Position numbers and translations under genes: made by a program
Shown here: positions 1,506 through 30,071 of the stretch, in pieces
Layout: each line of letters begins with the position of its first letter
How positions within the stretch are numbered: the stretch's first letter is position 1
The notes under the pieces: generated by a model
The model's database searches: none
What the model saw: the letters and a program-made list of their open reading frames with translations, nothing else
What the model was told of the DNA's origin: nothing
Source of the DNA: Malacoraja senta
Lineage: Eukaryota
Length of the DNA: 64,000 nt
Assembly (NCBI GenBank): GCA_038087875.1
Contig: JAXLNO010003434.1
Location: forward strand, 62,001-126,000
Direction: 5' to 3'

Positions 1506-1699
1506 GGAAAGTAGACTATCTGGTTTATCTAAAACTGCAGTTTGTGGAATTGACTGCATTCTGAATTGTAAAATAGTTATACTTTGAGAAACATCTATTC
1601 GGTTGTAAGATGCTATGTGAAATATGATTTTGTAATTGTTGTCCTTAAAACACCAATATAATCCCTACCATAAAACCTGATCCTGAAACTGTATTCACT

Positions 1700-1877
1700 G
1701 GCAATTAGTGACCAGAACAAGTGGTCTCATTCCCATTGGATCTAGTTATCAGGTTTGTGTATACATGGACCAATAATTAGCTTCACACCAGAGTTCTGTT
1801 AAAAAAGTGCAAGAGATTAAGTTACTGTTGCTGCATTTACTCTGCTGGTTAAATATTGTTGTGGGCGGCTGTTAAAC
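1700..1877 (+). promoter_or_regulatory. Candidate proximal promoter of the MHC class I-like gene
   Basis: Non-repeat DNA upstream of the leader ATG, with ATTGG (1735-1739), CCAAT (1770-1774) and GGGCGG (1863-1868); short motifs, could be chance. Confidence 0.3.
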
Positions 1878-1929
1878 ATGCTTCTTTTTACCTTACTCAA
1901 CACTTACGGTGTGGCCACTGTCTCCTCTG
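1878..1929 (+). CDS. Exon 1, signal peptide MLLFTLLNTYGVATVSS
   Basis: aaacATG, 17 mostly hydrophobic codons ending VSS, G|GTAAAC phase-1 donor matching the alpha1 acceptor (G+AT=Asp); 9 kb upstream so linkage is inferred. Confidence 0.6.
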
Positions 1930-7900: not shown

Positions 7901-10900
7901 GTTTTCTCTTTGGCATATCAAAGGCATGCTCAGTTGTGTTCAGATCGGGTGATTGACTTGGCCACTCAAGAATTAACAATTTTTTAGCTTTGAAAAACTC
8001 CTTTGTTGCTTTAGGGATCATTGTCTTGCTGTAGTATGAATCGCTGGGCAATGTGTTTTGAGGCCAATGTGTTTGAACTTGAGCATATAGGATGTGTCTA
8101 TACACTTCAGAATTCATTATGCTGCTACCATCAGTAGCTGAATGGTCAACAAAGCTAAGTTAGCCAGTACCTTCAGCAGCCATACATGCCCAGCCCACAA
8201 CACCCCCACCACCGTGTTTCACAGATGAGGTGGTCTGCTTTGGATCTAGGGCAGTTCCTTCTCTCCTCCATACTTTGCTCTTGCCATCACTCTGATATGT
8301 TAATCTTTGTATCATCTGACCAGAAGACCTTTTTCCAGAACTGTGGTTGCTCTTTTAAGTACTTCTTGGCAAACTGTAACCCGGCCATCCTGTTTTTGCG
8401 GCTAAACAGTGGTTTGCATCTTGCAGTGCAGCCTCTGTATTTCTGTTCATGAAGTCTTCTGCGGACAGTGGTCATTGGCAAATCCACACCTGACTCCTGA
8501 TGAGTGTTTCTGACCTGTCAGTCCCTTTGTGATTAGTAAAGGATTGGGGTTTTGTCTTTATTATAGAGAGAAGTCTTCTGTCATCAGCTGTGGAGGTGTT
8601 CCTTGGCCTGCCAGTCTCTTTGCGATTAGTAAGCTCACAGTGCTCTCTTTCTTCTTAATGATGTTCCAAACAGTTTGATTTTGGTAAGCCTAAGGTTTGG
8701 CTGATGTCTCGAACAGTTTTATTCTTGTTTCTCAGTCTCATAAAGAAGACAGAGGTGATATTGTTTGGCCCCAATGGCTGCCGTGAACCTCCCCTTGTTG
8801 ACTTGGGTCCACTGGCACGGTACGTGAAGTCAACAGTTTTGAACCTAGGTTTTAGGATGGACAGTGATTTTAAATTAGATCATCAAATAGGCGCGGTGGT
8901 TAAGTCCAGCTTCTTTCACCTAAGGAAGCTGGCAAAGGTGAAGCCCATTCTCGAGCGGCAGCATTTTGAAACAGTAATCCATGCCTTTATTACATCTAGG
9001 CTGGATTACTGTAACGCACTCTATTTTGGAGTTGCACGATCTTCACTGGCTCGTCTCCAGTTGGTTCAAAATGCTGCTGCTCGCCTTTTATCTGGAACTC
9101 GAAAGAGGGAGCACACAACGCCAATTCTGGCCTCCCTACACTGGCTCCCGGTGCACTTTCGGGTTCATTTTAAAATTCTTTTATTTGTTTTTAAATCTCT
9201 AAATGGGCTCGCCCCGCCTTACCTCTCTGAACTGCTCCACCCATACGCTCCTGCCCGGTGCCTCAGGTCAGCTGATCAGCTGCTCCTGGAGGTACCGAGG
9301 TCTAAGCGGAAGCTCAGAGGGGATAGAGCCTTCTCTGTTGCTGCTCCAGCACTCTAGAACACCTTGCCGTTGCACATCAGACAGGCCCCCTCACTGTCCA
9401 TCTTCAAAACCAGTATTAAAACACATTTATATTCCTTGGCTTTTGACACTGCTTGAGACTTTGCTCCTGTTTTAAGTGCTTTTAATGTTTTTAATTTTAT
9501 TGTTTTTACTCTTTCGTTTAATATTTTTATTGTTATGTAATAATTTCTTGTCCATGATTAGTCATGTACAGCACTTTGTTGCAACTGTGGTTGTTTTTAA
9601 AGTGCTCTATAAATAAAGTTATTATTATTATAATGGTCTCTTTTACTTTCATTGGCACAACTCAGGTCCTCCTGTTGATGAACAGCAATAAAAGTTTCCA
9701 AAGGTGATTGAAAGACTGGAGGAAAGACTAGATGCTGAGTTCTCTTATACCTGCATTAAGGAGGCATTTAAATACCCCTGAGCAATTACATACATCTGCG
9801 AAGCCATGTCCCAAACATTATTGTGCCCTGAAATGGGGGGGACTATGTATAAACACAGCTGTAATTTCTACATGGTGAAACCAAAATGGGCAAAAAATGA
9901 ATACATAAGTTTAAAATGAGGGGGGAAAGATTTAATAAGAACCAGAGGCATAGCTGTGGTGGGAGTACTGAATGAACTGCCGGAGAAGGGAGTTCAGGCA
10001 GGTACTATCGCAACATTTAAGAAACATTTAATCTGGTACATGGATAGATAGGTTTAGAAGGATATGGGCCTCCTCAGACAGCCTTGGAGCCCACGTCAAT
10101 GGATATTTCTCAGGTGGATATTGACAGATTCTTGATCAGTATGGGTGTCAAGGGTTATGGGGCGAAAGCAGGGAATGTGGTTGAGAGGGCGAGATAGAGC
10201 AGCCATGATTGAATTAGGCCATTCAGCCGTAGGTCCTGATTCCCTGCTGTATGACTCTTTGACTTTACCTCTCTATGATTTTATAAAATCTCCTTGACGT
10301 TGTCCATTTTCTTAATATAATAAAATATTCTTTGAATTTTGGAATATTGTAACTAGTAGGCTATATCGACATGATAGATAATAATAGATCTTTGAAGATG
10401 GGAAGCAATCCAATAGGATCATTCAATACCTCGACCACAATTGGTGGAATAGGTATCAGAGCCCATCTAGCCAACTCTTGAAGAAGGCTCAATGGTGCAG
10501 CATTAGAGATGCTGCCTTATCGCCCTTACAGCACCAATGCCCAGGTTGGATCCTGACAACGGGTCCTGTCTGTATGGAGTTTGTACATTCTCCACCTGAC
10601 CGGGTGGGTTTTTCCTGAGATCTTCAGATTCTTCCCACATTCCATGACGTACAGGTTTGTAGTTTAATTGACTTGGCGTAGAATGTAAATTGTCCCTTGT
10701 GTGTGTAGGATAGTGTTAGCGTGTGGGGGTTGCTGGTCAGTGTGGACTCAGTGGCCCGAAGGGCCTGTTTCCATGCTGTATCTCTAAGCTAGAAACTAAA
10801 CTAAAGGCTCCTGACACAAATTGTCACCTGATCATTGATGCTGCCTGCCCCACTGAGTTCCTCCAGCACTTGCATCTGCAGGTCCTTGTGACTCCCTTAT

Positions 10901-13900
10901 TCAAAGTTATTGTATTGTTATCAGTTTTAGCATTAATAACTTAGTTATTTTCAGTGAATGATACAATCATACTTATTTTTGTTTATGCATTGCAGATTTA
11001 CACCATCTTGCATTTTACTACCTGTTGAACCATGGATTGAATGAGCTGCCTGAGTACAGTATGGTAGCAATGCTGGATGACCTCCAGATAGCATATTTTG
11101 ACAGCACACTAGAGCGGGCTGTTGCCAGACAGCGATGGATGGCCCAGTCTTTCCCGCAGGATCACTGGGATTCAATGGCCATCACAGTTGCAGGTTTTCA
11201 TGGGATTGTCAGAGGAAATGCTGAGATAGTCTACCAACAGCAACATGGTATCTCGAGTAAGTGTCGTGAGCGGACCTGGGGTAGACACTCAGTGATGACA
11301 CAGATGGATTTTGTTTTAGTTTTGTTGCTGTCACATGATTCTCTGATACACTTTTTTTGCATGTTAGTCAATCACATCAAAGAAAACTATTCATAAATAC
11401 AATCAAACCAAACTCGTACAATAGGTAGAGCAAAGAGTGCAGAATGTAGTTCTCAGCTTTGTAAGGCACCAGTGCCAGAGACAAAGTCCAGTGTCTACAA
11501 TGGGATTGAGGTGAACCCTAGCATAAGGGAGGACTGTTCAGAAACCTGATAACATAGGGGAGGAAACAGTTACTGAGTCTGGTGGTGCACGCTTTAATGC
11601 TTACGTACCTTCTGCAGGAAGAAGAAGGAATGACCAGAGCGGGATGAATCTTTGATTATGTTGTCTGCTTTCCTGAGCCAGTTGAAATATAGATGGATTC
11701 ACTGGTGGGGAATCATGTTTGTGTGATCGACTGTGCTACATCTCCACCTCTCTGCAATTTCCAGCGGTCTTGGGCAGAACTCTTTCCAAACTAAGTTGTG
11801 ATGCAACCTGTCAGTATGCTTTCTATGGCACATTTGTAGAAGTTTGTAAGAGTCATTGGAGATGCCACATTTCCTTAGTCTCCTGAGGCAGTAGGTGAAC
11901 CAGAAGCTCTCAACCTTTTTCACTTCAGCACCATTGATGCTGTTTCAGACATTTACTCCATCACATTTTGATAGAGACACGGCCCATCGTCTATATTTAA
12001 TGTGTCCTAACTGCTGAACACCCATTGATAACAGTTGGCTGGTGATAGTCACTTTATGGGTTAAGCATTTGATATTCAACACCAGTAATAAGTGGATGGA
12101 TTGGATCATCTGTTTTATTGGGCTGGAATGAGGGAGAAACCATTAGTTTACTTATAGCCTGATCACCTAGAGATGGGACCTTGATTTAAGCTGGTTGATG
12201 GTGACTATGATGTATTCCCTCAACAATAATATTCTGTTAATCCAGCATTCCCTCAATATTGGCAACAATCCACAGAGGGTGTAGCAATCCCACACAGTGC
12301 AACAGCCTTGATGTACTTCCCATCTGCATTGCCTTAACCTTCAGACTGACCTGTTGGCTCTGTAGCATTGCCCATCTGACAATGCACTCCTTCCTCTGTT
12401 CTTTATGTACGACAGTGCAGAAATCTGAGTTCTACCCTTCTGACATAGCAGAACTCCTTTAGTGTTACATCCGCAACAGTAAAGCTTCCCCCCTCAACAC
12501 TTGAGGTTAGTCCATGCACTCAGTATATAAACCATGGGTCATTGAGTCATTGCGTCACACAGCATGGAAACTGGCCCTTCTGCTCACTGAATCCACACTG
12601 ATCATCCATTGTGCTAAGATGGAGTCACAGCAAACTGCAGATGCTGCCAATCTGAATTAAAAACAAACAGGAGGAACTCAATGAGTCAGGCAGCATGCTG
12701 TGGAAAAATGGACAGAAAACATATGAGACCAGGACCATTTAGAGTGATGGGGTAGAGTGGAGAAAGCTGGAAAGAAAAGTAGTCTGTGTGGGATAGTGTT
12801 AATATGCGGGGATCACTGGTCACTGCGGACTCGGTGGGCCGAAGTAAACCTCTGAAGTAAACCTCTGAAGTAAACCTGCTCCTGTGCTGTACAGCTCTAT
12901 GTTGTGTTCTGTTATGCCTGTTTGTACCATGCTGAGAACTGATTTGTAAATTGCCTCTCCCTTCCATCCACTCTCCCCAACCAAAATTCCCCACCTCAGC
13001 CCCAGCTGTTTTCTTTGTGCAGGGTTTCTGCGGCTGTGAAGTGGACAGTGACAATTCCACTGATGGGTTTGTCAGACTGGGTTATGATGGGGAGGATGCC
13101 TGTGCTTTTGACAAGGACAGAATGCGCTGGATTGCACTACGTCCAGATTTCCAGATGCTAGCAGATCGGTGGAATATCAACACCTTCATGAACAAGTATT
13201 TCAAAGATCTCCTGGAGAAGGACCGTGTGAAGTGGCTGCTGATATATCTGGAGTGTGGACAAGAAGCACTACAGAGGAGAGGTATACGACGTACGCACTC
13301 TGACTGATGGGCCAGAGGATATCCTCTGGATAGATCAGGTGGGAAATATCATGCACGTCAGGCTGTCACTTGAGTAATTATTTAGTTTAGTTTAGAGATA
13401 CAGCTCGGAAACCCACCGACACCGCACCGAGCAGCCATGCCCGCACACTAACACTATCCTACACACACTAGGGACAATTTGCATTTATACCAATCCAATT
13501 AACCTACAAATTTGTACGTCTTTCGAGTGTGAGGGGAAACCAAAGATCTCGGATAAAACCCACGCAGGTCACAGGGAGAACGTACAAACTGCGTAAAGAC
13601 AAGCACCCGTAGTTAGTAACAAACCCAGGTCTCTGGCGCTGTAAGGCAGTAGCTCCACCGCTTCGCCACCCTGTTCTACAACGTGGGTATCAGTAAATTG
13701 TCTGGCAACGTGCCTCTTAGATGGAGCCAGTGGGTAGGAAGTGCAAGTGAAAGATAAATATTGTACCAGCGTCCTCTATCCACAGTCATATAGATATTCA
13801 AGAAATGGAGGGATATGTATCTTGGTCTTATGTTTAGCATTGACCTTGTGGCCTGAAGGGTCTGTTGCTGTGCTGATCAGAAACCCAATCAGATTCTCTA

Positions 13901-16900
13901 TTTGCCTCTATTACTCCTTGGGATGGTGACATTCAATTTCCAACAGTTCTCTGGTTGAAGAACTTCTTTCTCCCATTCCCTCTTGGAATATTTTGTGTTA
14001 TTATTCAGCAGAGATTCATGAACAAGTAGAAGCAATCATGTCTACAGTATCAATCCCAATGGTGAGTTATACTCCTCCATTGGGCCCTGCATTCTCCTTT
14101 CATCTGCGCTGTCAGTTCAAGTCTGGAGCTAAGATAAGGAGCATGTCAGTGATATTAAAACTAAATGTTTTGTTGTTTTGCCAGAAATGCAAAATGAAAA
14201 GAGAAAAGGCTGTAAACTTTGTGCAAGATAGAACTGCAGATGATGGTTTACACCGAAGATAGAAGATGTTGGAGTACCTCAGTGGGTCAGATAGCATCTC
14301 TGGGCATTCCTTCTCTCCAGAGATGCTGCCTGACCTGCTGAGTTATTCCAGCATTTTGGGTCTAGGCTGGAAACTTTGTTCAGCTGGAGAAAAAACTGAT
14401 TGGGAAAGAGGTGAGTTGCAGTGATCTTACAATTGAAGGCTTTTGTTCATGTCTTCACTGATTCTGACGCTTCCTACACTTGCAGAAACCCCTGAGGTGT
14501 TTATTGGGATTAAACGTGATGAGTCACTATCACTGAGACTCTCCTGCCTTGTCACAGGCTTCTACCCACGGGGCATCGATGTAACGTGGCTGAGAGATGG
14601 TGAGGGAGACCACGAGTCTGAATCCAGTGATGATCTGTTGCCCAATTGGGATGGGACTTACCAGCTGAAGAATACAATTCAACTGAGTAGAGAAGATGTG
14701 GCAAAATTCTCCTGTTACATCGAACATGCAACTCTGCTGCAGGGAGTCAATGTTCCACAGGGTAAGTGGCAAGTCAATGAGGCTGATCACTTGAGACAAT
14801 AAACCTCCTGGACTGAGATAACAGCCTCAACACACTCTTAACTAAACTGTGCATTTAGATTTTAGACTTTAGAGATATGGTGCAGATACAGGCCCCACAG
14901 CTCACTGAGTCCTCGCTGAACAGTGATCATCCCGTACATTTACACTAACCAACACACTGGGGACAATTTACAATTTTACCTAAGCCAAGTAACCTTCAAG
15001 CCTGTATGCCTTTGGAGTGTGGGAGGAAACCGGAGCACCCGGAGAAAACCCACGCAGTCACAGGGAGAACATACAATGTCCTTGCAGACAGCACCTGTAG
15101 TCAGGATCAAACCCAGGTCTCTGGTGCAGTAAGGCAGCAGCTCTACCGCTACGCCACTGTGCCACCCATTATTAATTTGTGGTTATCTAATTGCCCAGAA
15201 TTATTGATAGTCAATGGAATGTGGTTTTACTTTAAGAGATACAGCGCAGAAACCGGCCCTTTGGCCCACGAGTCTGCGTCAACCAGCGATCCCTGCACAC
15301 TTACATTATCGTACTTATTAGGGGACAATTTACAATTATACCAAGCCAATTAACCTACAAACCTGTATGTCTTTGGACTGAGGGAGGAAACCGGAGATCC
15401 AGGGTAAAACCCACGCAAGTCCCGGGGAGAAGGTACAAACCTCTGTACAGACGGGACCCGTAGTCAGAATTGAACCGGGTCTCTGGCGCTGTAAGGCAGC
15501 AGTTCCACCGAGTGGGCAAAGCAGAGCCAAATGGAATACAGTGTAGCAAGTGTCTGGTTTTACATTTTGGCAGTCGGAATAAAGACATAGACTATTTAAT
15601 AAATGGGGAGAGAATTCAGAAATCTGAGCTACAAAGTGGGAGTACTAGTGCAGGATTCCCAAATAGTTCATTTGCAGATTGAGTCAGTGGTAAGTAAGGC
15701 AAATGCAATGCCAGCATTCATTTAACCATATAACCATATAACAATTACAGCACGGAAACAGGCCATCTCGACCCTTCTAGTCCGTGCCGAACACGTATTC
15801 TCCCCTAGTCCCATATACCTGCGCTCAGACCATAACCCTCCATCCCTTTCCCGTCCATATAACTATCCAATTTATTTTTAAATGATAAAAACGAACCTGC
15901 CTCCACCACCTTCACTGGAAGCTCATTCCACACAGCCACCACTCTCTGAGTAAAGAAGTTCCCCCTCATGTTACCCCTAAACTTCTGTCCCTTAATTCGG
16001 GGGGACTAGAAGTTTAGGGGGGACATTTCGGGGGGACTAGAAGATAAAAACAATGATATAATGCTGAGGATTTATCGGGCACTGGTGAGGATACATTTGG
16101 AATATTGTGAGCAGTTTTGGGCTCCATATTAGAAAGGATGTGCTGGCTTTGGAGAGGGTCCAGAGGAAGTGTGTCCTGGGGATGATTGATTTAACGTATG
16201 AGGAATGTTTGAAGTCTCTGTGCCTGCGCTCGTGGGATTTAGAAGGATGAGGGGGGAATCTCTGAAACATACCAGTTATTGAAAGTCCCAGTTAGTGGAT
16301 GTGGATAGGATGTTTTCAGTAATGGGAGAGTCTAGCACAGCCTCACAATAAAAATACGTACTTTCAAAATGGAGATGAGGAGGAATTTCATTAGTCACAG
16401 GGTGGTGAATCTGTGGAATTCATTGATACAGACAATTGTGTGGGTCAAGTCATTGCATATTTTAAAGCAGAGAATGATAGGTTCTTGATTAATATGGCTC
16501 CCAAAGGTTACAGGGAGAAGGCTGGAGAATGGGATTCAGAGGTAAAAATAGATCTGCCATGACTGAATGGTGGAGTAGACTCAATGGACTGAAAGGCCTA
16601 CTTCTGCTCCAATGGTAAAAAATATTCTTATGTCACCCTTAACTCACAGATCCAAATGTAGGAAGCAAGATAGGCTGATCCTGGCCAAGGTCTCTTATCT
16701 TATTTCTTGGGCATCTAGCTAATTTTTTTATAGTAGCTAGTTGCACAAAAGGCCAATAGTGGTGCCACATCCAACCCCATTATCAGTCTGAAGTAGCAGC
16801 ACCTGTTCTGTAGCTGACTTATTTGTTCCAGTCAAAACCTCTGCAAATATCTTCACACCAGGGCCAAGCTGACATGGTTAAAATTGCTGGTCACTACAAA

Positions 16901-19900
16901 TAGACAGTAGTGTTAATGTCTGAGTGTGCCTATGTGTGTGTGTGTGCGCGCGCGTGTGTGTTTGTGTGCGCTCATGTGTGTGAGACAGAGAGAGGGGGAG
17001 AGGGAGGGAGGGAGGGAGGGAGGGAGGGAGGGAGAGAAAGAGAGTGTGTGTGTGTGTGAGAATATCAAACTCTCAGATATTGAAATATCAGCAAAGTTTA
17101 AAACCTTTGAAGTTTTATCAACTATAAGTGGGTTCACTTTTATTTGCTAAAATAACAATGGTCAACATAAGAAAATAGCCTTGTTGACCTCTACACTGCA
17201 TATAGTCATCTATTTCTGACATATGCTTGATTCTTTAAATTCATAATTAAATGCTGCAGATAAAATCTCAACGCTAATATGAACTTCAAAGATTTTTCAT
17301 TGATCTATTTAAACATCCATCGTCTGGACAATTACATAAATCTAAGACTTTGTTATTTTTATTTAGATGTGAACAATGCTAGTTTAATGTAGATAATAAA
17401 ATCATTACAGGACTTCCGGTGGGGGCGACATGCTGGAGTAGTCGCACTTTTCCACGCTCCCGACCTTTTCACCTCCAACTTTTATTACAGCTCAGTCTAA
17501 GTTTTTTAACCACCCACAAACATTTAAACATCATTGTGAGTACCTCTCTATGCTGTAAAGATGCCAAACAAAGGAAAGAAAGCGGAGCAAAAGACAGAAG
17601 ACCCGGCGGCCAGCGCCAGTATGGCCACGCTAGCAGCCATGTTAACAGAACATAAGGTATTGTTACTGGCAGAATTCAACACTGCGTTCACCAAATTGGA
17701 AACGAAGCTGGACAATATCCAGACCACTATGTTAGACCACCAACACCGTCTCTCATCATTAGAGTCTTTTGCCGCTACCACTAGCCAAGATATACGAGCT
17801 ATAACGTTAATGTTAACTACGGTGACCGAAGAGAACGCCAAGGTAAAGGCTAAGCTTATTAGCCTGGAAGGCAGGAGTTGCCGAAATAACGTAAGGATAG
17901 TGGGTCTTCCCGAGAATATCGAGGGCTCCCAAACAACAGCGTTTTTTTCTCAACTTCTGCTCGAGACTCTTGGCGAACACATACTGGAATCAACCCCGGA
18001 ACTAGACCGAGCCCACCGTACGCTAACAGCCAAGCCAAGCCCTGGTGAGAAACCCAGAGCAGTTGTGATCTGCTTTCATAGATACCAGACCCGTGAGTTC
18101 GTGGTACGTGAGGCTCGGAGGCAGAGGGGTAAGCTGAAATACAAAGATACCCCGTTCCACATTTTCGAAGACCACTGTCCCGACATAGTTGAACAACGCT
18201 TCGCGTACCGAGACGTTATGAAGGAGCTGTATAACCTGGGTTTCAAACCCTCCCTTCATTATCCAGCCAAGCTGTTCATAATGTCCGGGGAGGGAAAGAG
18301 GCGACGACTAACATCTCCCGAGGACGCTCGGGATTTCATCTCATCTCACCATCGACGCAGACCGGGACCCACAGATGACTGACTTCGTTCAGTACGTCTA
18401 TATTCGAGTGGCACAGGGGCCCGGTTAACCTATGGTTACATGGACTAACTTTAGCTTGACTGTTCCTAATAACTAGCTATGGTTAGCGTTCAGCATTGCT
18501 GATTATACTAGACCCCGGTTTCGAAATGTATGAGGCAGGTAAGGAATCACCAGGATTTGTGAATGTTTTATATCAACTTTTTCTTATATTGGTCTATGCA
18601 TAATCGTGCTTGAGGGGTCCCTCACCAGCATATGCTATAAAGCTGGGCTTAAGGGACCCACTTTGTGGTTTGTGATTTGGTCTCTGCCTTCCTGTTCTTA
18701 GCAGCTGGCCGCTAACGCTGTCAGCACCTGGCTAGTTTGCTTATACTAATCTTCATAACGAACTGTCTGGGGCTGATAAGAGCTCATTACAGCCAGGGCG
18801 GTGTTATACAAATCTTATCTTATACCTTTTTTGTTTAACAAAACATAATTGATGCCTTTAGCGCTGTGCTTTAATCCAACAGCCCAGTTTGTAATTTGCT
18901 AACTTTTCCAACGCCAACTCTCTCTTTATACTTTGTCGATTTTAAGACATACTATGCAACACCAAAGGAAGTTATTCTGGCTCCACTTACACGTTAGCCG
19001 GTTTATTTAGTATCACCATTTTGTTAATAGGCTTTGTCTTATTGTGACTATCATCATTGCTATTATTACTATAAGGGTTAGCAATGGTACTGGCAGTGCA
19101 ACCATTATGGCTATTATTTTAACCTTGCATTTACCAATGTATGTTTATCTTACTTTATTCCTACTCTGTTTTTCAAATTATTATCATCACCGTCATTATT
19201 ACTATTACTATACTTATTTTATTTCATGTTACCTTATCGACACTGAGTGACTCCATCGCTTTGGGAAGCTGTGATATAGGGAGTTAAGATCGGATATCTC
19301 CATGCGGAAGCGAGGACAACGCACCTTGGTGCAAGGGGCACTTAAGGTTCAGTTGAGACATGGGGGATCTCAGGTCTGGAGACTCAGGTTTGAAAGATGG
19401 TTAAATGATATGTGTTCCACTTGTTTGCCGTGTGTGTATGTTTTTGTTCTTGTTTTTTTTTTTTTTTTTTTTTTTGTTGTTGTTTTATTTTACTTCACAT
19501 ATATATATTCACCCCCCCCCCTCCCCCTCCACATCCCCACTCTCGGCAGCTGGCTTCGATGCGCTCTTCCGTCTCGTTTTGCAGAACTACAGCGCATTAC
19601 CCATATAGCTAAAAATGGCCAACACAAACGATACTTTTAGATTTGTCTCGTGGAACGTGAGAGGGATGGGAAGTCCTACCAAAACTGATAGGATCTTGGC
19701 CCATTTGCAACAGCTCAAAGGCGATATATTCTTTATCCAAGAGACCCACCTTCGCAACAGAGAGGTAACACGGCTTAAGAGAGGCTGGATTAGTCAACTA
19801 TTTCACTCGAAATTTAATAATAGGGCCAGGGGCACCGCTATCCTGATTCGTAAGAACATTAAGTTCGAACCACAGAAAACTGTGGAAGACCCTGCTGGTC

Positions 19901-22900
19901 GCTTTGTCATGGTGTCGGGCAAATTGCAAGACACACCTGTCATATTGGCATGCATTTATGGACCCAACTGGGATGACAGCTCATTTATAACTAAATTTTT
20001 TACATCTCTCCCAAATATTGAAAATCACCATGTCATTGTGGGTGGAGATTTTAATCTGGTCCAAGATCCTATACTGGATAGATCTTCGAATAAAGCCTCT
20101 ACTTTAACTAAATCCGGTAAGACTCTGCATGTTCTCGCCAAACAACTGGGGCTCACAGATCCATGGAGATTTATATTCCCCACGACTAAATTATTTTCAT
20201 TTTTCTCCCACGTACATCGTATGTTTACCCGTATAGACTTCTTTCTTTTAGATAATAGATTGCTTTCCAAAATCAAATCCAGTGAGTACCATAGCATCGT
20301 AATATCAGATCATGCTGCGACCTCCCTTGATCTTCATTTTCGTAAACGAACTAACCCCTTTAAGTGGAGGTTCAACTCCTCATTATTAGCAGAGGCTCAC
20401 TACATGCAATTCTTGCACTCCCAAATCACCCTATATTTTGAGCTGAATGACTCGCCGGACATAGAAAGAGGTATACTTTGGGAAGCTTCAAAAGCCTATA
20501 TTAGGGGCCAACTCATTTCCTTTATCTCCAACCTGAAAAGAACGGAGACGTTCCAAACGGCAGATCTGTTACAAAAAATAAAGGACATTGATGACAAATA
20601 TGCATCTGACCCAAACCCTAATCTCTATAGAGAACGCCTTAGGCTACAAACAGACTTTGACCTCATATCCATTAATAAAGCCAAACTACGACTGCTTAAA
20701 TCTAGGCAAATACTTTTTTGAATCTGGGGATAAAGCTGAAAAGCTTTTGGCCCATCAGGCCAGAACAGATGCGCCTTCACGGTTAATTCCAGCCATTAGA
20801 TCCAGCTCAGGGGAGACTCATACTGATCCTCTCAGAATTAATGAAGCATTTGCTAAATTCTACACTGAACTATACACTTCCGACTGTCCCCCCACTGCAG
20901 GTGACATGTTCAGTAGTATGACGCTTCCCCGAATAGACGAAGAAGCCATGAGAGACTTGGGTGGTCCCATAACTGTAGCTGAGGTCCAAGCAGCCATCAC
21001 ATCGCTGCAAAGCGGAAAGTCACCCGGCCCTGACGGCTTCTCTGTAGAATATTACAAAGCTTTCTCTGACCTCCTTGCATCAGTCCTGAGAGACATGTAC
21101 AACGAGGCGTTTTTAAATCGTCGCCTACCGCCCACCTTGTCGTGGGCTACCATCTCCCTAATTCTTAAAAAGGAGAAAGATCCCCTGCTTTGTGGTAGCT
21201 ATAGACCAATCTCACTCCTGAATGTGGACCTCAAAATCCTTTCTAAAGCCCTTGCGCTTCGTCTTCAGCGAGTGATGCCCTCTATTATCTCGTTGGATCA
21301 AACAGGGTTTATACCTGGTCGACAGTCTTCCCATAATACTAGGCGTCTCCTTAACATCATTCACTCTTCGAGTAATGAGACCCCGGAGATGGTGGTCTCC
21401 CTCGATGCCGAAAAGGCCTTCGACAGGGTCGAGTGGAGGTACCTATATGAAGCGATGGATAGGTTTGTCCTCGGTAACAGTTTTATTCTCTGGGTGAGCC
21501 TATTATATTCATCCCCGGTGGCTTCAGTACAAACAAACGACATACTGTCGCCCCACTTCACACTTCAGAGAGGTACCAGACAGGGTTGCCCGTTATCTCC
21601 ACTCTTGTTTGATGTTGCGATAGAACCCCTGGCGGTCTGGTTACGCGCAGAGAAGGGCTTTAAAGGTATTACACGGTTTGACACAACTCATAAAGTCTCA
21701 TTGTATGCGGATGACCTGCTCCTGTTCATCTCGAACCCAGTCAGTTCTCTCCCTGTGATTATGAATATTTTAGAACGGTTTGGTGCATATTCTGGTTATA
21801 AACTTAACTACCAAAAGAGTGAGCTATTACCGATTAACTTACCGGCTAAGCAGCTCCCTCGCTCTTTAACCTCATTCAAAAGGGCAGAGGATGGGTTTCG
21901 CTATCTCGGCGTTTTTATCACAATTCCCTTATCTGATATGTTCCGCACAAACTTTTTGCCTCTGGTTGAGAAAGCCGAAAAAGATTTTGATCGCTGGTCA
22001 GTCTTACCACTATCCCTCGTGGGCCGGATAAATCTGGTTAAGATGGTTGTCCTACCCAAATTCCTGTATCTTTTCCAGCATGTCCCCATACTTATCACCA
22101 AATCTTTTTTTGACAAATTAGAAAGGACAATATCTAAATTCTTATGGGGTAGCAAACCGGTCAGAATCCGAAAGGCGATACTGCAGTCGCCTAAGAGTGA
22201 TGGCGGTTTGGCCCTCCCTGATTTTAGGCGATACTACTGGGCAGCTAACTTGCAAAAACTCCTGTATTGGATGAATGATGATTGCGAGCACCCACCGATC
22301 TGGGTATATATGGAAAAGGCGAGTTCACGTCTCCCATTGCGGTCTGTCCTATGCTCCCAACTCCCCCTTTCTATAACATCTGTGGGTGCAGGCCCAATTG
22401 TGTCCCTTTCGCTCAAGATATGGAGTCAATTTAGGAAAAACCGGTTTACAGGGTCCTTCCATCTTGACCCCACTGCTTAAAAATCACATTTTTAAACCTT
22501 CAAGTATAGACCACGCATTTAAAACCTGGCATAGTAATGGCATCAGTAGTATTAAAAACCTATATAAGGATGGTATCTTCTCATCTTTCGCGGCGCTCTC
22601 GTCTAACTACAACCTCCCAAACTCCCACCTTTTTCGGTTTTTCCAGATTAGGGATTTTGTGAGGAAGACATTTCCCTACTTCCCAAATCGCCCTCCTGAA
22701 CCCCTGACTGATATCATCTTAGCTTTAGACCCCAATCGGAAGAAATGCATCTCTATTTTGTATAATTTGCTAGGGTCGGTTTTATTGAAACCTCATACCT
22801 CATTAAAAGCTGCGTGGGAGGGAGAGCTGAATACGAAATTAACAGACCAGCAATGGGACTCTGCCTTGGATTTGATCCACTCTTCTTCCATATGCGCTCG

Positions 22901-23625
22901 TCATGGCCTAATCCAATGCAAAGTCCTTTACAAAGTCCACTATACAAATGCAAGATTAGCTAGAATGTACCCAGCTGTCAATGACACCTGTAACAGATGT
23001 AGTCAATCTCCTGCCAACCATAGCCACATGTTTTGGTCTTGCCCTAAGCTAGCAGCCTTTTGGAGGAGTGCTTTTGAATTGATAAGCAGAGCTTACGACC
23101 AGACTATTCTTCCAAATCCAATGTCAGCCATTTTCGGTACCCCTCCCAATACCAACCTCTCTGTTGCGGTGAAACGGGTCCTAGCTTTTACAACCTTGTT
23201 AGCCCGGAGACTGATCTTGCTTAGTTGGAGGCTCACCTGTCCCCCGACACACGCCCGTTGGATTAAGGAGGTGCTTTACAATCTGAAACTTGAAAAACTT
23301 AGGTTCTCTCTCAAAGGCTCTACCAAGACATTCCTAGATACATGGAACCCTTTCTTTGAACTGGTTAACTCTCTTACCTTGTCCCCGGACTCGGAAGAGG
23401 ACTGAGTGTTCTCCATCATCGTTTTGTTCTACAGCAGCTGCTTTCCCCTTAATCCCCCCTCCCTACAATTGTTTATTTAGATATATATGTATATATATAT
23501 ACTTTTTTTTTAAATTTTCATTTTATTTTATATATTTATATATAAACAACACTCACATACGTACACATCCGCACACAAATGGTAGAATAGACGAAACAAA
23601 ATGTGCTATATAAAAGAAATAAAAA

Positions 23626-23675
<50 letters not shown>

Positions 23676-24222
23676 TTTTTATTTCTTTTATATAGCACAT
23701 TTTGTTTCGCCTATTCTACCATTTGTGTGTGGATGTGTACGTATGTGAGTGTTGTTTGTCCCCGTTTGGCTCCGACCTGACTTGGGTGGGTTGAAGGTGG
23801 GTATGGGTAAAGGTTTTGAGGATCGCTTACATACTGTTGTACAATTATGCCTTGATTATTACTGTCTGTTATTATTGTATGTATGTTAATTGCCGTGAAA
23901 TTCAAATAAAAAGATTAAATTCAAAAAAATAAAATCATTACAATGTCGTTATTGATCAATAAATGTTTAAAATGCCCTATATCTGCCAACAGAGAGGGCA
24001 GCGAAAGAAGATATAAAGATTAGGATCGTGACTGGAGCTGTAATCGTTCCTCTTATTCTCCTGGGGATCATCCTTGGAATTGGTTGCTGGAAGAAGAGGA
24101 AAAGGAGAAAAATTCTCAATGAACAGGGACCAGCTGACAACAGCAGAGACCAGGAGAGGACTGCAGTGACCATGAAGCACAACCAGCTTCCGTTGGGAAG
24201 CAGAGGAGGTCTACCGGAATGA
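1878..24222 (+). CDS. Non-classical MHC class I-like heavy chain gene, join(1878..1929,10996..11256,13006..13281,14486..14761,23993..24222), 364 aa
   Basis: Five exons, all phase-1 GT-AG introns, lengths 52+261+276+276+230=1095 nt, open throughout; domain order leader-alpha1-alpha2-alpha3(C1-set Ig)-TM-cytoplasmic tail. Confidence 0.8.
2233..2260 (+). ncRNA. Minimal type I hammerhead ribozyme motif in a Penelope-derived tail
   Basis: CTGAAGA-A-GGGT-CTCG-ACCT-GAAAC-GTC: full core, stem II with one G-U pair, palindromic ACGT helix III; helix I only 2-3 bp. Confidence 0.55.
2963..5821 (-). mobile_element. 5'-truncated CR1 LINE with near-complete, frameshifted ORF2 (APE endonuclease + RT)
   Basis: ORFs 5496-5825 (VAISETWL, GGVALL), 4877-5383, 4406-4843, 3616-4428 (PQGS, YADD), 3077-3583; (TTATATGG)n 3' tail; possible 9-bp TSD ccaccactt 2954-2962 / ccacgactt 5822-5830. 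Confidence 0.93.
6500..7045. repeat. Cluster of Penelope-derived tail repeats in both orientations
   Basis: Several gaaggaactgcagatgctgg..gctggagtaactcag..ggcagcatc units. Confidence 0.75.
6956..6983 (+). ncRNA. Minimal type I hammerhead ribozyme motif, best-preserved copy
   Basis: CTGAAGA-A-GGGT-CTCG-ACCC-GAAAC-GTC; all core nucleotides, perfect 4-bp stem II, GUC cleavage triplet. Confidence 0.65.
7115..7163. repeat. C-rich tract (G-quadruplex-prone on the minus strand)
   Basis: Multiple C4-C9 runs separated by single A/T. Confidence 0.7.
7486..9890 (-). mobile_element. Decayed Tc1/mariner transposon with IR/DR-type long TIRs, interrupted by an L2 LINE
   Basis: TA|ctgtgacctccataatg left end; internal direct repeat ccataatgtttsggaca; inverted copy of the inner TIR at ~9806-9890; transposase remnants VFWSDDTK (8287-8487) and WPSQSPDLN (7887-8117). 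Confidence 0.9.
8744..9630 (+). mobile_element. 5'-truncated L2-clade LINE nested in the Tc1 transposase
   Basis: KTEVILFG..SRLDYCN..LQLVQNAAARL..LHWLPV..RAFSVAAP; one TGG>TAG stop at 9355-9357; aataaag(tta)n tail; Tc1 sequence resumes on both sides. Confidence 0.9.
10491..10805 (+). mobile_element. tRNA-derived V-SINE (HE1-like)
   Basis: Degenerate A/B boxes, V-domain-like core, CR1-like tail gggcctgtttcc..(actaa)n. Confidence 0.8.
10996..11256 (+). CDS. Exon 2, MHC class I alpha1 domain
   Basis: ttgcag|AT acceptor, A|GTAAGT donor, 261 nt; DLHHLAFYY..LPEYSMVAMLDDLQIAYFDS..RQRWM..DHWD carries class I alpha1 motifs (H3, DD, FDS, W51, W60). Confidence 0.9.
11330..11945 (-). mobile_element. 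Rex1/Babar LINE 3' fragment in intron 2
   Basis: KVESF..LRRLRK remnants, homologous to 46020-46755. Confidence 0.7.
13006..13281 (+). CDS. Exon 3, MHC class I alpha2 domain
   Basis: ccccag|CT acceptor (in-frame alternative AG at 12998-12999), G|GTATAC donor, 276 nt; Q96, GC101, GYDGED, W133, W147, W167, Y171, LQRR. Confidence 0.92.
13381..13673 (-). mobile_element. tRNA-derived V-SINE in intron 3
   Basis: Head ggtggcgaagcgg..gggtttgtt, core, (tttag)n tail. Confidence 0.85.
14486..14761 (+). CDS. Exon 4, MHC class I alpha3 (C1-set Ig) domain
   Basis: ttgcag|AA acceptor, G|GTAAGT donor, 276 nt; LSCLVTGFYPRGIDVTW..LLPNWDGTYQL..FSCYIEH. Confidence 0.95.
14855..15510 (-). mobile_element. Two tandem V-SINE copies (about 14855-15165 and 15228-15510)
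   Basis: Each has the ggaggaaaccggag core and an accc(g/a)ggtctctgg B-box region. Confidence 0.8.
15510..16600 (+). mobile_element. Old CR1 fragment split by a younger antisense CR1 3' end (15725-15997)
   Basis: Host CR1 reads through on both sides; insert has the same ccatataa tail and body as 2963-3260. Confidence 0.75.
16925..17058. repeat. Compound microsatellite (TG)n-(CG)n-(TG)n, (GA)n/(GGAG)n
   Basis: Direct reading. Confidence 0.9.
17561..18382 (+). CDS. L1 ORF1p (coiled coil + RRM/CTD), 273 aa, intact
   Basis: LEGRSCRNNVRIVGLPE, LDRAHR, PRAVVICFHRY, IFED, YPAKL motifs. Confidence 0.88.
   Translation: MPNKGKKAEQKTEDPAASASMATLAAMLTEHKVLLLAEFNTAFTKLETKLDNIQTTMLDHQHRLSSLESFAATTSQDIRAITLMLTTVTEENAKVKAKLISLEGRSCRNNVRIVGLPENIEGSQTTAFFSQLLLETLGEHILESTPELDRAHRTLTAKPSPGEKPRAVVICFHRYQTREFVVREARRQRGKLKYKDTPFHIFEDHCPDIVEQRFAYRDVMKELYNLGFKPSLHYPAKLFIMSGEGKRRRLTSPEDARDFISSHHRRRPGPTDD
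19615..23405 (+). pseudogene. L1 ORF2 (APE endonuclease, RT, C-terminal Cys-rich domain) with two frameshifts
   Basis: VSWNVRG, IQETH, GGDFN, SDH; QGCPLSP, YADD; CNRC..H..FWSC; frame changes at ~20708-20719 and ~22436-22442; no in-frame stop along the repaired reading path. Confidence 0.92.
23544..23757. repeat. 214-bp near-perfect AT-rich palindrome
   Basis: 87-bp arms (23544-23630, 23671-23757) with 2 mismatches around a self-complementary (TA)20. Confidence 0.95.
23993..24222 (+). CDS. Exon 5, connecting peptide, transmembrane helix and cytoplasmic tail with stop
   Basis: caacag|AG acceptor in phase with alpha3; ERAAKEDIKIR-IVTGAVIVPLILLGIILGIGCW-KKRKRRK..GLPE*. Confidence 0.75.
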
Positions 24223-24675
24223 TGTCTGGATTAGTGGGGTATTAGCCACAGGGAGAAGTTGGACAGACTTGGATTGTTTTCTCTGGAATGTCGGGGATTG
24301 AGGGGAGACCTGACAGTAATATATCAAACTGGGAGGAGTACAGATAGTGTAGACCATCAGACTTTTTACCCAGGAAGGAAATATCAAATAAGAGCAGGTA
24401 TAGCTTTACAATGAGTGGCAAAGTTTAAAAAAGATGTGCAGGTCAAGTGTTTTACGCCAAGGGTGGCGAGTGACTGGAATGTGCTGCCGGGGGTGGTGGT
24501 GGAAGCAGATATGATAGTGGCATTTAAGAGACTTTTAGATAGGCACATGTATATGCAGGGAATGAATGGATATGGATTATGTGCAAGCAGATAACAATTG
24601 GTCTTGGCATCATGTTCGGCACAAACATTGTGGGTCAAAGGGACTGTTATTGTGCTGTACTGTTCTATGTTCTAT
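24193..24675 (+). mobile_element. CR1 3' fragment overlapping the end of MHC exon 5 and forming its 3' UTR
   Basis: QRRSTGMMSGL..ISHREKLDRLGLFSLE from 24201 matches QRRFTRLIPGM..LSYEERLDRLGLYSLE of the CR1 at 27061-28077. Confidence 0.85.
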
Positions 24676-26403
24676 GCTCTTTATTGTATCAATGCTGACT
24701 GATGGCTTTACATTCAGCCATTAATTTTTCAACTGCTGTCTTCACCAGTTACCCTGTGATTCCAAAGTCATACATTGTGCCACATTTTGGAATAAGAGGT
24801 CGCCTATTTGACTGATTGATACTTTATTATCACATGTGACATGTCACAGTGAGATTCTTTGCTTTGCATAACATACACAAGGTATAGAAAGAGTCACCAT
24901 GTATAGGGTGCCGACACAGTTACAAAGTAATCATTACAGTCCCCAATGGTCCCTCTTTGTTCTCGGCAGCCCCTCCATGTTGGGTTCACCTGTGTTATCC
25001 GCGCCCCCTCCCCCCCCAACCCCGGGACCCACTTTGTTATCTTTGTTCTCGGCAGTCCTCCCATGTTGGGTCCCTCTTTAAAATAGTTACGAAGAAGATT
25101 TATTTTCCAGGAGGTGTATGATTTGCCTGAACATTCTATTCCAGCTGTGAAGACAAGGTGAATGAATATTTTCCAGGTTGAGATATAGAGAATTTTAGAT
25201 CAGAAATGAATCAAAGGTAGCAGGAATAATGCAGTAAACTGATCAAAATCAGATTGGACATAATGTTATTGAATGATGCAGTCTGTTCAAGGGGGCTTAC
25301 AGCTGATTACTAATCTTATTTTATAAAAAACATAAAAATATTCATCTCAGGAAGAGGCCCTTTGGCCCACAATGTCTGTGGTGAACATGATGAGATGCTA
25401 AACTGATCCCATCCAACTGCAACATGATCCATATCCCTCTATTTCCTGCAGATCAGTTTGTCGATCTAAAAGCCTCTCAAACATCATATACATATCTTGC
25501 CAGAGATAGACACAAAAAGTTGGAGAAACTCACCGGATCAGACAGCATCTCTGGATACAAGGCATAGGTGACATTTCGGGATGAGACCCTTGTTCAGACT
25601 CCAGAAATGCTGTTTGACCCGCTGAGTCACTTCAGCTTTTTGAGCCTATCTTCGGGTTAAACCTGCATCTGCAGTTCGTTCCTAGTTATTTTGCCACTTC
25701 TCTTTGTCACATACTGTAACCTGCATTCCTTGTTCACATACCTGATGGTGTAGTGGAGAAGTAATTGCCTTTGCATTTAATGCTTTACTCAGTGCTTCAA
25801 GTATTTGATGGGCCAGTCAACAAGGATCTTTGTTTTCAATACGAACCACGCTCTACACCACAGCTTAGATAATATTGCTTAGTTTAGTTGAGTTATACAG
25901 CATGGATGCAGAGCCTTCAGCTCATCGAGTTGATACCATCCATCCTGCACACCAGTTCTATGTTATCCCTCTTTCACATCCGCTTTCCATACACTAGGGC
26001 AATTTTACAAAGGCCAACTCACCTACAAACCTGTACATCATTGAGATGTGCGAGGAAACCGGAGCACCGGGAGAAATCCCACGTGCTCACAGGGAGAACA
26101 TGCAAACTCCACATAGACAACATCCCAGTACCATGTCCAGTGAATATTTATGGAACATGGTAACGTATGGGGGCTGTGTTTTGTTGACCTGACAGAGCAC
26201 TGGGAACAATACTCATTATCAAAGATGTGGTGTAATAGCTGTGGAAGTGTTTTATGTGCAACAGACCGAGAATTTCATTGTATATCCACCAGTGTCATTT
26301 CTGAATTATGAGCATTTAATAAAATACTTTTGAATGAGTTTTACCAAGACGTTAGCATGCTATATACTTGTTTTGTCATTGTTAATACTGCAGACAGCTA
26401 TTT

Positions 26404-26830
26404 ACTCAATCATAAGATCATAAGTGATAGGAACAGAATTAGGCCATTCATCCCATCATTCATGGCTGATCTATCCTATCCTCCAAACCCCATTTTCCTG
26501 CCTTCTCCCCATAACCCCTGACACCCATACTATTCAAGAATCTATCTATCTCTGCCTTAAAAAAATATCCATTGACAGCCTCCACAGCCTTCAGTGGCAG
26601 AATTCCACAGATTCACCACCTTCTGAATAAAGAAATTCCTCCTCATCTCCTTCCTAAAGGAGTGTACTTTAATTGTGAGGCTTTTCCCTCTGCTGAGATG
26701 CTCCCACTAGTGGAAACATCCTCTCAACATCCACTCTATCCAGGCCTTTCACTATTCGGTAAGTTTCAATGAGGTCCCCCCCTCATCCTTCTAAACTCCA
26801 GTGAGAAGAGGCCTAGTGCCGTCAAACGCT
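26404..26830 (-). mobile_element. CR1 3' fragment
   Basis: cataagatcataag tail, typical 3' UTR and RT end. Confidence 0.75.
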
Positions 26831-26967
26831 CATCAGAGTGGAATAACAACAACTTTACTCTTCATATAACCAATTGTCAAAACTCACACCTCCACATTCA
26901 GGGGCAGTCTCTTCCCAATTGTTATCAGGCAACTGAAACCATCCTACCTACAACCAGGGTGCAGTCT

Positions 26968-28100
26968 TACATAGATACATAGAAAATAGGTGCAGGAGTA
27001 GGCCATTCGGCCCTTCGAGCCTGCACCGCCATTCAATATGATCATGGCTGATCATCCAACTCAGTATCCCGTACCTGCCTTCTCTCCATACCCCCTGATC
27101 CCTTTAGCCACAAGGGCCACATCTAACTCCCTCTTAAATATAGGCAATGAACTGGCCTCAACTACCCTCTGTGGCAGAGAGTTCCAGAGATTCACCACTC
27201 TCTGTGTGAAAAAGTTTTTCCTCATCTCGGTCTTAAAGGATTTCCCCCTTATCCTTAAGCTGTGACCCCTTGTCCTGGACTTCCCCAACATCGGGAACAA
27301 TCTTCCTGCATCTAGCCTGTCCAACCCCATAAGAATTTTGTACGTTTCTATAAGATCCCCTCTCAATCTCCTAAATTCTAGCGAGTATAAGCCAAGTCTA
27401 TCCAGTCTTTCTTCATATGAAAGTCCTGACATCCCAGGAATCAGTCTGGTGAACCTTCTCTGCACTCCCTCTATGGCTATAATGTCCTTCCTCAGATTTG
27501 GAGACCAAAACTGTACGCAATACTCCAGGTGTGGTCTCACCAAGACCCTGTACAACTGCAGTAGAACCTCGCTGCTCCTATACTCAAATCCTCTTGCTAT
27601 GAAGGCCAACATACCATTCGCTTTCTTCACTGCCTGCTGCACCTGCATGCCTACTTTCAATGACTGGTGTACCATGACACCCAGGTCTCGCTGCACCTCC
27701 CCATTTCCTAATCGGCCACCATTTAGATAATAGTCTGCCTTCCCGTTTTTGCCACCAAAGTGGATAACCTCACATTTATCCACATTATACTGCATCTGCC
27801 AAACATTTGCCCACTCACCCAGCCTATCCAAGTCACCTTGCAGTCTCCTAGCATCCTCCTCACAGCTAACACTGCCCCCCAGCTTAGTGTCATCCGCAAA
27901 CTTGGAGATGTTGCTTTCAATTCCCTCGTCCAGATCATTATATAAAATTGTAAATAGCTGGGGTCCCAGCACTGAGCCTTGCGGTACCCCACTAGTCACT
28001 GCCTGCCATTGTGAAAAGGACCCGTTTACTCCTACTCTTTGCTTCCTGTTTGCCAGCCAGTTCTCTATCCACATCAATACTGAACCCCAATACCGTGTGA
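26968..28100 (-). mobile_element. Young 5'-truncated CR1 LINE
   Basis: Uninterrupted 338-codon ORF 27061-28077 (PQGSVLGP, FADD, HLEYCVQFWSP), catagatacatag tail. Confidence 0.93.
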
Positions 28101-29140
28101 TTTAAGTTTGTATCCTAATCTCTTGAACTACTGTCTCCTGCATTGGAGATCCTCGGGCAATCTTTAATCGGACTTTACTGCCATTATCTTGCACCAAATG
28201 TTATTCACGTTATTCCCTTTATCATATATCTGTACACTATGGATGGCTCGATTGTAATCATGTATTGTCTTTCCACTGACTGGTTAGCACATTTAGTTTA
28301 GTTTAGTTTAGAGATACAGGGTGGAAACAGGGTCCGCACCAATTCCCGCACACTAACACTATCCTACACACACTTGGAACAGGTTTACATTTATACCAAC
28401 CCAATTAACCTACATACCCATAGTCAAGATCAAACCCGGCTGTGTGGCACTTAAGGCAGCAACTCCAGTGCTGCATCACCATGCTGTCCTTATTGTTGTA
28501 GGATGTGCAGGGAATGGAGGTATATTATGTGCAGGCAGATAGGAGTTGGTCTTGGCATCATGTTCAACACAGACATTGTGGGCCAAAGGGCCTGTCCTGT
28601 GCTGTACTGATCTATTGTGGTGATTGTGAAAACACATAATAATTACTTGATTGCTGATATCTTAAGTGTATTTACTAGGTACATTAAATATTTAGACAAA
28701 ACTAAATTCCACTCCCGAGCCATCTAATTCCCACACCCCATTCAGCGTGAAACATCAACTTTATTGAGGTAATGATATATTTATTTTCTGTTAATATTTA
28801 ACTGTGAGTTTAATGTTACACCAAATGATAATTGGCTTGTTTCCATCAGTGTTTGCAATCTGGATGACCCTGAATTTATTGCTTAGGTGTGAGATTCATC
28901 GCAAGGACTGAGATGAAGCAGAAACTTGACTGTTACAGACTTTTTGGAGGGGTTTGCAAGATTTTGACCCAACACCTCTGAAGGCAAGACAATATATTTA
29001 CAAGCAGCCTCAACCGCACCTCAGACAGTGCCATCCAGGCACTCGTCACTGTCTGTGAAAAAACATGCCCTGCACATTTCCTTTAAACATTCATCTTAAA
29101 ACTATGCCCTCTTGTATTTAATGTTTCCATCCATGTTGAG

Positions 29141-29456
29141 TTTAGTTTATTTTAGTTTAGAGATACAGCGTGGAAACAGGCCCTTCGGCCCACCGAGTCC
29201 GCACCGACTAGTGATCGCTGGGCATTAGCACTATCCTACACACACTCGGGACGATTTACACATACACCAAGCCAATAATCTACATACCTGTACATCTTTG
29301 GAGTGTGGGAGGAAACCGAAGATCTCGGAGGAAACCCATGCTGTCATGGAGAGAACGTACAAACTCCACACGTACAGCACCCGTGGTCGGGATGGAACCT
29401 GGGTCTCCCACGCTGCAAGCGCTGTAAAGCAGCAACTCTACCGCTGCGCCACAGTG
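29141..29456 (-). mobile_element. tRNA-derived V-SINE
   Basis: Full head-core-tail, gtggcgcagcgg A box. Confidence 0.88.
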
Positions 29457-30071
29457 ACTGCCCCTGTTCTGACTATCTATCCTATCTATACCTCTCATAG
29501 TTTTATGTACTTCTATCCGGTGTCCCATCAAACTCCGGCATTGTAGCGGAAGCAATCCATGTCTGTCCATATGTTTTCATGTAGCCAACACACCCTAGTT
29601 GAGGCATCATTCTTGTAAACCTCTGCACCCTTTCCAATGCCTCTACATCCTTTATGTAATGGGTCAACAAAAACTACACATAATACTCCAAATGTGGACT
29701 ACCCAGCCCTATAAAACTGTATTATGACTTCCTGTCTCTAGAAACCCAAGATTCAACCCCAAGATCTCTCTGTAGATTAATGCTGTTAAGGGTCTTGCCA
29801 ATAACTGTATACTTTTCCTTTACATTCGACCACTCAAAGTGTAACATACTTGCTCAAAATGAACTCCATTTGCAATTTTCTGCCCATTTCTGTATCTGAT
29901 GTATTTCCCATTGTACACTACAGCCTTCTTCACTGTTCGCAACTCCATCAATGTTGGTGGCGCCTGCAAACTAACTAACCAACCCAACCACTGGGTGGCG
30001 CCAGCAATGGCTGTCTCGCCAACAGTCTGTCTGTCCCTTCCTTCTTTGTGTTTTAATAGTATGTGTTAAAC

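Follow-up and report, generated by a model that had tools for sequence, protein, structure and literature searches.

Intronic L1 insertions that damage their host gene have been documented in mouse and human, among them Glrb-spa and Lama2 dy-Pas (PMC6466679, PMC4859970). Mammalian L1 is A-rich in its sense strand, and elongation defects and premature polyadenylation have been attributed to this composition (Han et al. 2004; Perepelitsa-Belancio and Deininger 2003; both as cited in PMC6466679). Here we describe an L1 of a cartilaginous fish, the skate Malacoraja senta, inserted in the last intron of a class I gene of the major histocompatibility complex (MHC). The window, i.e., the whole stretch analyzed, comprises 64,000 nucleotides (assembly GCA_038087875.1, contig JAXLNO010003434.1, positions 62,001 to 126,000 of the forward strand), and coordinates are those of the window unless another locus is named. 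The finding appears to be an ordinary case, a young and species-specific intronic L1 placed by standard target-primed reverse transcription at a site that is still empty in the orthologous gene of the little skate, Leucoraja erinacea. The insertion is probably tolerated, being neutral or mildly hypomorphic, with splicing from 14761 to 23993 likely to give the main product of the gene.

The element spans 17410-23927 (6518 bp) on the + strand, in the same sense as the host gene, and lies between the two copies of a target-site duplication (TSD), AATAAAATCATTACA, at 17395-17409 and 23928-23942. These are identical at 15/15 positions, start 6533 bp apart, and make up the sole direct repeat of at least 15 nt with element-sized spacing in the interval 17200-24200. 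The repeat search thus confirmed a preliminary description of this DNA, made from its letters, which had recognized a 6518-bp L1 with a perfect 15-bp TSD whose right copy ends at 23942, and all the coordinates given there proved correct. The same description had the L1 in gene orientation with an AATAAA at 23905, as is also seen from a count of hexamers and from the strand of the long open reading frames (ORFs) of the element, all of which are on the + strand like the MHC exons. The L1 3' end reads ...AATAAA(23905)AAGATTAAA(23914)TTCAAAAA, with an ATTAAA at 23914, and is followed before the right TSD copy by an A tail of about five A, the TSD copy itself opening with two A. L1 endonuclease uses a T-rich/A nick site, and the bottom strand at the left TSD edge, read directly, is 5'-TTTTATT/A. 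The locus therefore carries the hallmarks of L1 insertion, namely a TSD of 15 bp (within the range of ca. 7-20 bp), a poly(A) signal followed by an A tail, and a nick of the T-rich/A type. The parts of the element and its borders are the following.

17395..17409, + strand: left TSD AATAAAATCATTACA, 100% identity to the right copy, single copy in L. erinacea
17410..23927, + strand: full-length L1-clade LINE, 6518 bp, in gene sense (TSD bounds, ORFs, domains, and sibling alignment)
17410..17560, + strand: L1 5' untranslated region (UTR), 151 nt, beginning at the same base as the sibling copy of L. erinacea
17561..18382, + strand: ORF1, 273 amino acids (aa), open, with RRM and C-terminal domain (CTD) regions matching human LINE-1 ORF1p
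18383..19614, + strand: inter-ORF spacer of 1.2 kb with a T-rich tract at 19435-19492 (ORF and repeat readings)
19615..20721, + strand: ORF2 piece 1, APE-type endonuclease (PF03372, E 4.8e-19), frame lost at ca. 20709-20711
20588..22480, + strand: ORF2 piece 2, in a second frame, reverse transcriptase (PF00078, E 1.8e-38), frame lost at ca. 22441-22442
22386..23405, + strand: ORF2 piece 3, in a third frame, putative C-terminal zf-RVT region (PF13966, E 1.3e-05) to the ORF2 stop
23406..23927, + strand: L1 3' UTR with an (AT)n microsatellite (23618-23690), AATAAA (23905), ATTAAA (23914), and an A tail of ca. 5 nt (23923-23927)
23928..23942, + strand: right TSD, holding an AATAAA of the original target (repeat match and L. 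erinacea alignment)

The spacer has in addition an ORF of 112 aa (19302-19640), which overlaps ORF2 from its start codon (19615) onward, over 26 nt.

Judged by its predicted proteins, the element is an L1-clade LINE. The Pfam endonuclease match of ORF2 spans the whole profile length, and the reverse transcriptase piece, itself a strong Pfam match, is far closer to human L1 ORF2p (E 1e-111, 377 bits) than to R2 proteins (E 1e-27). The zf-RVT match at the ORF2 C terminus, with 26.2 bits, is slightly below the gathering score of 27.5. A Pfam scan of ORF1 gave no match at E 0.01 and a weak hit to Transposase_22 (E 0.028), and ORF1 is assigned to L1 because of matches in PDB and among homologues: residues 107-262 match human ORF1p 2ykp (E 1.5e-10, PDB search), and the homologous proteins carry names such as L1 RRM-domain or LINE-1 type transposase proteins. 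The nearest database protein to ORF1p is an uncharacterized one from L. erinacea with 85% identity. In the genome of this second skate (GCA_028641065.1, contig JAMYXN010000918.1) we found a sibling L1, locus L001 7855-14504, that aligns to bases 6-6514 of the M. senta copy at 87-89% nucleotide identity. Both share the first base and the start motif GGA..TCCG.TGGGGGC, and both have an AAATTCA-type 3' end. Since the sibling shares its start and aligns from end to end, the M. senta copy is full length for this L1 family, as it had been called from the beginning. Teleost ORF1-like proteins (Entelurus aequoreus LOC133657643 and a Logan contig) are 68-69% identical to the skate ORF1p over the full length. 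Such identity is high for L1 ORF1 across the cartilaginous-bony fish split, and could reflect either slow evolution of an L1 lineage in fish or transfer by a horizontal route.

The host gene was identified by searching the translation of the alpha3 exon against 1.84 billion protein representatives. The search led to P0076, a 359-aa protein of L. erinacea, 84% identical over alpha3, whose gene carries the Pfam domains MHC_I and C1-set. A tblastn of P0076 on the window recovered four open exons with 76-94% aa identity, by which the host is a predicted non-classical MHC class I gene with its terminal coding exon at 23993-24222.

10998-11252, + strand: alpha1 exon (tblastn with P0076)
about 12978-13281, + strand: alpha2 exon (tblastn with P0076)
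14486..14761, + strand: alpha3 (C1-set immunoglobulin) exon, donor GT at 14762-14763 (direct reading; tblastn, 83% aa identity to P0076)
14762..23992, + strand: last intron, 9231 nt; subtracting the L1 and a single TSD copy leaves ca. 2.7 kb, the length also found in L. erinacea (ca. 2.7 kb)
23943..23992, + strand: remaining original intron, 50 nt, with TTGAT (23952-23956), AATAAA (23958), a weak pyrimidine tract, and AG (23991-23992)
23993..24222, + strand: coding part of the terminal exon, i.e., connecting peptide, transmembrane (TM) helix, cytoplasmic tail, and stop (87% aa identity to P0076 residues 281-359)

The splice predicted in the window from 14761 to 23993 yields ...VNVPQ-E-RAAKEDIKIRIV..., or more fully ...VNVPQ-E-RAAKEDIKIRIVTGA...GGLPE*. 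P0076 reads ...VNVPQ-E-RAAKDDIKIRIVTGA... at the same place and ends in ...GGLWE, i.e., the alpha3-to-TM junction is the same in both. Phase and junction together thus support the intron, exon, and acceptor first proposed for this site (AG at 23991-23992, 50 nt past the TSD). All four coding exons are intact and open in the L1-bearing window, but this says little about the effect of the insertion, which is too young for decay to show.

Comparison with L. erinacea provided the state of the site before insertion. The locus of P0076 in that genome (L002) is colinear with window positions 10310-30000 at 87-92% identity. Window 17152-17409 corresponds to L002 21641-21897 and window 23928-24876 to L002 21883-22827, two segments that overlap by exactly 15 bp. 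The three-way alignment (L. erinacea L002 21818-21960) reads ...GCTAGTTTAATGTAGAT-AATAAAATCATTACA-A(C/T)GT(T/C)GTTATTGATCAATAAATG..., with the 15-mer in single copy. The L. erinacea orthologue is a clean empty site. We also aligned Logan contigs of runs X2, X8, and X1, which represent three coded organisms other than L. erinacea (X1 is organism A and X8 is organism D).

X2, contig of 682 nt: aligned to window 23928-24250, with 359 unmatched letters to the left
X8, contig of 719 nt: aligned to window 23928-24271, with 375 unmatched letters to the left
X1, contig of 117 nt: aligned to window 23928-24026, with 18 unmatched letters to the left

In the three cases the match begins exactly at 23928, and the letters to the left of it do not fit the L1 3' end. 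X2 and X8 diverge from the window by 4-7% here. X1 is much closer in the unique 3' flank, with a divergence of ca. 1.2% (9/781 letters; 24979-26323). According to these alignments the insertion is more recent than the separation from L. erinacea and from no fewer than two other taxa, and one short, low-depth contig (X1) is suggestive of its absence also in a very close relative or a conspecific haplotype. Over the TM exon and the preceding 65 nt, X1 is 4-7% diverged from the window and lacks 9 nt at 24159, which could point to a paralogue, to gene conversion, or to an allele lineage that has diverged.

The insertion is therefore not shared across species, the site being empty in L. erinacea and in the three contig sets, and it is lineage-specific and young. 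The perfect TSD is consistent with youth, and so is an ORF2 with two indels and no stops. The preliminary description had already suspected a young element, and the empty orthologous sites, together with the TSD and the few ORF2 lesions, agree with it. This L1 has no second copy in the window, and the protein database contains none from the same species (the top match to ORF1p is the one at 85%), so that the only bounds on its age come from the empty sites, the TSD without mismatches, and the pair of ORF2 indels. As L1s are repeats that can be misplaced, and the junctions of the filled site are known from the assembly alone, we also considered an artefact in which an L1 was misjoined into the intron. 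Such an error would hardly leave a perfect 15-bp TSD at both ends of the element next to an endonuclease-type target, nor would it explain that L. erinacea has exactly one 15-mer with contiguous flanks. This combination of TSD and empty-site geometry is the signature of true retrotransposition, and the mis-join was rejected as extremely improbable.

The locus is best explained by a canonical, recent L1 retrotransposition, with target-primed reverse transcription starting at the bottom-strand 5'-TTTTATT/A. It placed a full-length L1, in gene sense, in the intron before the terminal exon, with 15 bp of target duplicated and the intron expanded from ca. 2.7 to 9.2 kb. The probable branch point, the pyrimidine tract, and the acceptor are all downstream of the point of insertion, so that the 3' splice-site unit is untouched, and the copy probably suffered its two frame-breaking ORF2 indels later.

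These indels bear on whether the element can still move. An intact L1 has ORF1 and ORF2 uninterrupted; here, ORF1 is open and ORF2 is spread over three successive frames (19615-20721, 20588-22480, and 22386-23405), without in-frame stops outside the two breaks. Both breaks (ca. 20709-20711 and ca. 22441-22442) coincide with length differences from the L. erinacea sibling, of 1 nt and 2 nt, and we infer that they arose after insertion. With two frameshifts in ORF2 it is unlikely to retrotranspose or transduce on its own and, as far as its frames tell, is most likely no longer autonomous. A copy whose frameshifts were assembly errors would be a different matter, since it would be a still active source that may retrotranspose and 3'-transduce the TM exon. 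The perfect TSD would fit such a source, as would ORF1 and the three ORF2 pieces, open apart from the two breaks, and the very short poly(A) tail, with a terminator that could be bypassed. However, the 1-nt and 2-nt differences from the sibling are not within long homopolymers, which assemblers miscount, and because of this assembly error is not the likeliest cause of the breaks. The TM exon is single-copy in the window, and no transduced copy occurs in the three other loci compared with it. We consider an active source very unlikely and retain the view of a copy that has lost its autonomy.

How the insertion affects the gene depends first on the splice signals, which were scored by simple consensus and pyrimidine counts. 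Going upstream from the acceptor, the next AG is found at 23912 in the filled allele and after ca. 70 nt in the inferred empty allele. By the logic of the AG exclusion zone, the branch point is expected within this AG-free stretch, and branch point, pyrimidine tract, and AG usually fall within the last 40 nt (PMC1431707). In the AG-free zone of both alleles we found a single yUnAy, TTGAT (23952-23956), whose A is 38 nt away from the exon. This motif, 10-14 nt downstream of the right TSD and unchanged in L. erinacea, is the probable branch-point candidate. The preliminary description had put the insertion in or beside the branch-point region; it is beside it, with the candidate outside the duplicated target, and not in it. 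The branch-point candidate, the pyrimidine tract, and the acceptor AG are all untouched by the L1.

Polyadenylation signals are the second concern. The L1 sense strand has 6 AATAAA, where 2.8 are expected from its composition, and 3 ATTAAA (3.1 expected). In the 2.6 kb of intron that precede the L1 there are already 5 AATAAA and 1 ATTAAA, and two more AATAAA were present before the insertion at less than 65 nt from the acceptor (one belongs to the TSD, the other is at 23958), both kept in L. erinacea. The AATAAA that the L1 brought at 23905 is thus not a qualitatively new hazard, because the target already bore such hexamers. In the L1 sense strand, A makes up 27% and T 30%. As for cryptic splice sites, donor-like sites number 2 (1.4 in shuffles) and acceptor-like sites 3 (0.8 in shuffles), i.e., the counts are near chance. 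The L1 sites of this kind are at 18539, 18702, 19585, 23696, and 23797. Among them, an acceptor-like site after a T-rich tract, with 23696 as the first exon base, and a donor-like AAG|GTGGGT at 23797 are found in the L1 3' UTR.

From this arrangement we infer little effect on RNA processing, and tolerance with normal use of the terminal exon remains our preferred reading. Several points weigh against it. The normal splice from 14761 to 23993 is a prediction from the sequence. The acceptor is weak (11/16 pyrimidines, with an A-rich tract), which leaves some room for interference, and a strong L1 terminator (AATAAA plus ATTAAA) is located only 70-90 nt upstream of it. The two sites in the L1 3' UTR could delimit a cryptic exon of 101 nt (23696-23796), 200 nt before the TM exon. 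In NF1, an Alu inserted 44 bp upstream of an exon, the case of Wallace et al. 1991, reportedly led to exon skipping. Reduced expression or exon skipping can result from an intronic L1 at any position in its intron, as in mouse Glrb-spa, with a full-length L1 in intron 6 (PMC6466679).

Much of this would favor a more damaging outcome, in which the L1 poly(A) signals, the extra 6.5 kb of intron, or the cryptic sites divert many transcripts from the TM exon. The product would be a truncated, possibly soluble, or unstable MHC class I mRNA, or else an L1-TM chimeric RNA started from the L1 promoter. The sense orientation of the L1, its excess of AATAAA, and the U/GU-rich sequence after the A tail would all suit such diversion, in addition to the terminator, the possible cryptic exon, and the mouse mutations just mentioned. 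Yet the branch-point candidate, the AG-free zone, and the acceptor are untouched and conserved; the two AATAAA next to the acceptor precede the insertion, are conserved in L. erinacea with five more upstream, and have evidently been tolerated; the sense strand does not have the A-rich character of mammalian L1; and the cryptic sites are about as frequent as expected by chance. Damage on this scale seems unlikely to us, and tolerance of the insertion the better account.

RNA data were sought with the TM exon plus flanks and with the alpha3 exon, and no RNA run matched in these run searches. X22, a polyA RNA run of organism D, covered neither the TM exon nor the unique 3' region (depth zero), a result that is silent on the carrier allele because the DNA of organism D (run X8) has the empty site. 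X22 did have reads on the L1 3' end (23700-23900), with the first mate on minus at a ratio of ca. 10:1. In most stranded libraries such a bias would indicate sense-strand transcripts of the L1 family. Upstream of 23726, the X22 transcripts have a different sequence, with 447 loose ends, which suggests another L1 subfamily.

Other features of the host gene were noted in passing. An AATAAA is located at 14798, 37 nt past the alpha3 donor, where L. erinacea has CATAAA. Read-through of this donor would add GKWQVNEADHLRQ and a stop, producing a possible TM-less isoform. A second L. erinacea locus (L003 10001-14232, contig JAMYXN010000412.1) shares 86-89% identity with window 11426-14819. The gene model there, P0077 (263 aa), has alpha3 running into the intron, without a TM exon, and the locus may represent either a haplotig of this MHC class I gene or a paralogue that has been truncated. 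The alpha2-alpha3 intron of L002 contains ca. 4.8 kb of extra repeat-rich sequence (13663-18480) compared to the window, and evidently each lineage has gained its own transposable element insertions in this gene.

The exact empty site in another genus documents a recent full-length insertion by this skate L1 family and provides a dated presence/absence marker inside a cartilaginous-fish MHC class I gene. If it is polymorphic and alters the use of the terminal exon, the insertion would offer a natural test of the effect of an L1 that is not A-rich on host RNA processing. One can also imagine, as a rather improbable variant, a segregating L1 that, with its sense-oriented terminator 70-90 nt ahead of the weak acceptor, shifts part of the transcripts to intronic polyadenylation, giving a TM-less secreted form or less product; if true, this would be a natural expression polymorphism of a hydrophobic-groove antigen-presenting gene caused by an active fish-type L1. 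On present evidence, the insertion should not be read as a functional lesion.

Compared with its closest relative, the L. erinacea sibling, which sits in another genomic place, the M. senta copy has ca. 585 bp less spacer and ca. 208 bp more ORF2. With human L1 (ORF2p 8c8j and 8sxt; ORF1p 2ykp) it shares the two ORFs, an ORF1p with RRM and CTD, and an ORF2 with APE, reverse transcriptase, and a putative C-terminal zinc-binding region, and with vertebrate L1 in general the 15-bp TSD, the T-rich/A target, and the terminal AATAAA. It differs from these in its 1.2-kb spacer, an A tail of only ca. 5 nt, a sense strand with 27% A, a 5' UTR of 151 nt, and an ORF2 frameshifted twice. At the level of the host gene, the NF1 Alu is similar in being a retroelement a few tens of nucleotides upstream of an acceptor, but in the skate the exon concerned is the terminal one, which cannot simply be skipped, and the probable branch point is between the insertion and the acceptor. 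Glrb-spa and Lama2 dy-Pas are the nearest parallels, with a full-length or nearly full-length L1 in an intron of a functional gene and possible effects on splicing, polyadenylation, and elongation. In those mice the RNA defect has been demonstrated, whereas the skate L1 is known from sequence alone, is not A-rich, and has left the splice unit intact.

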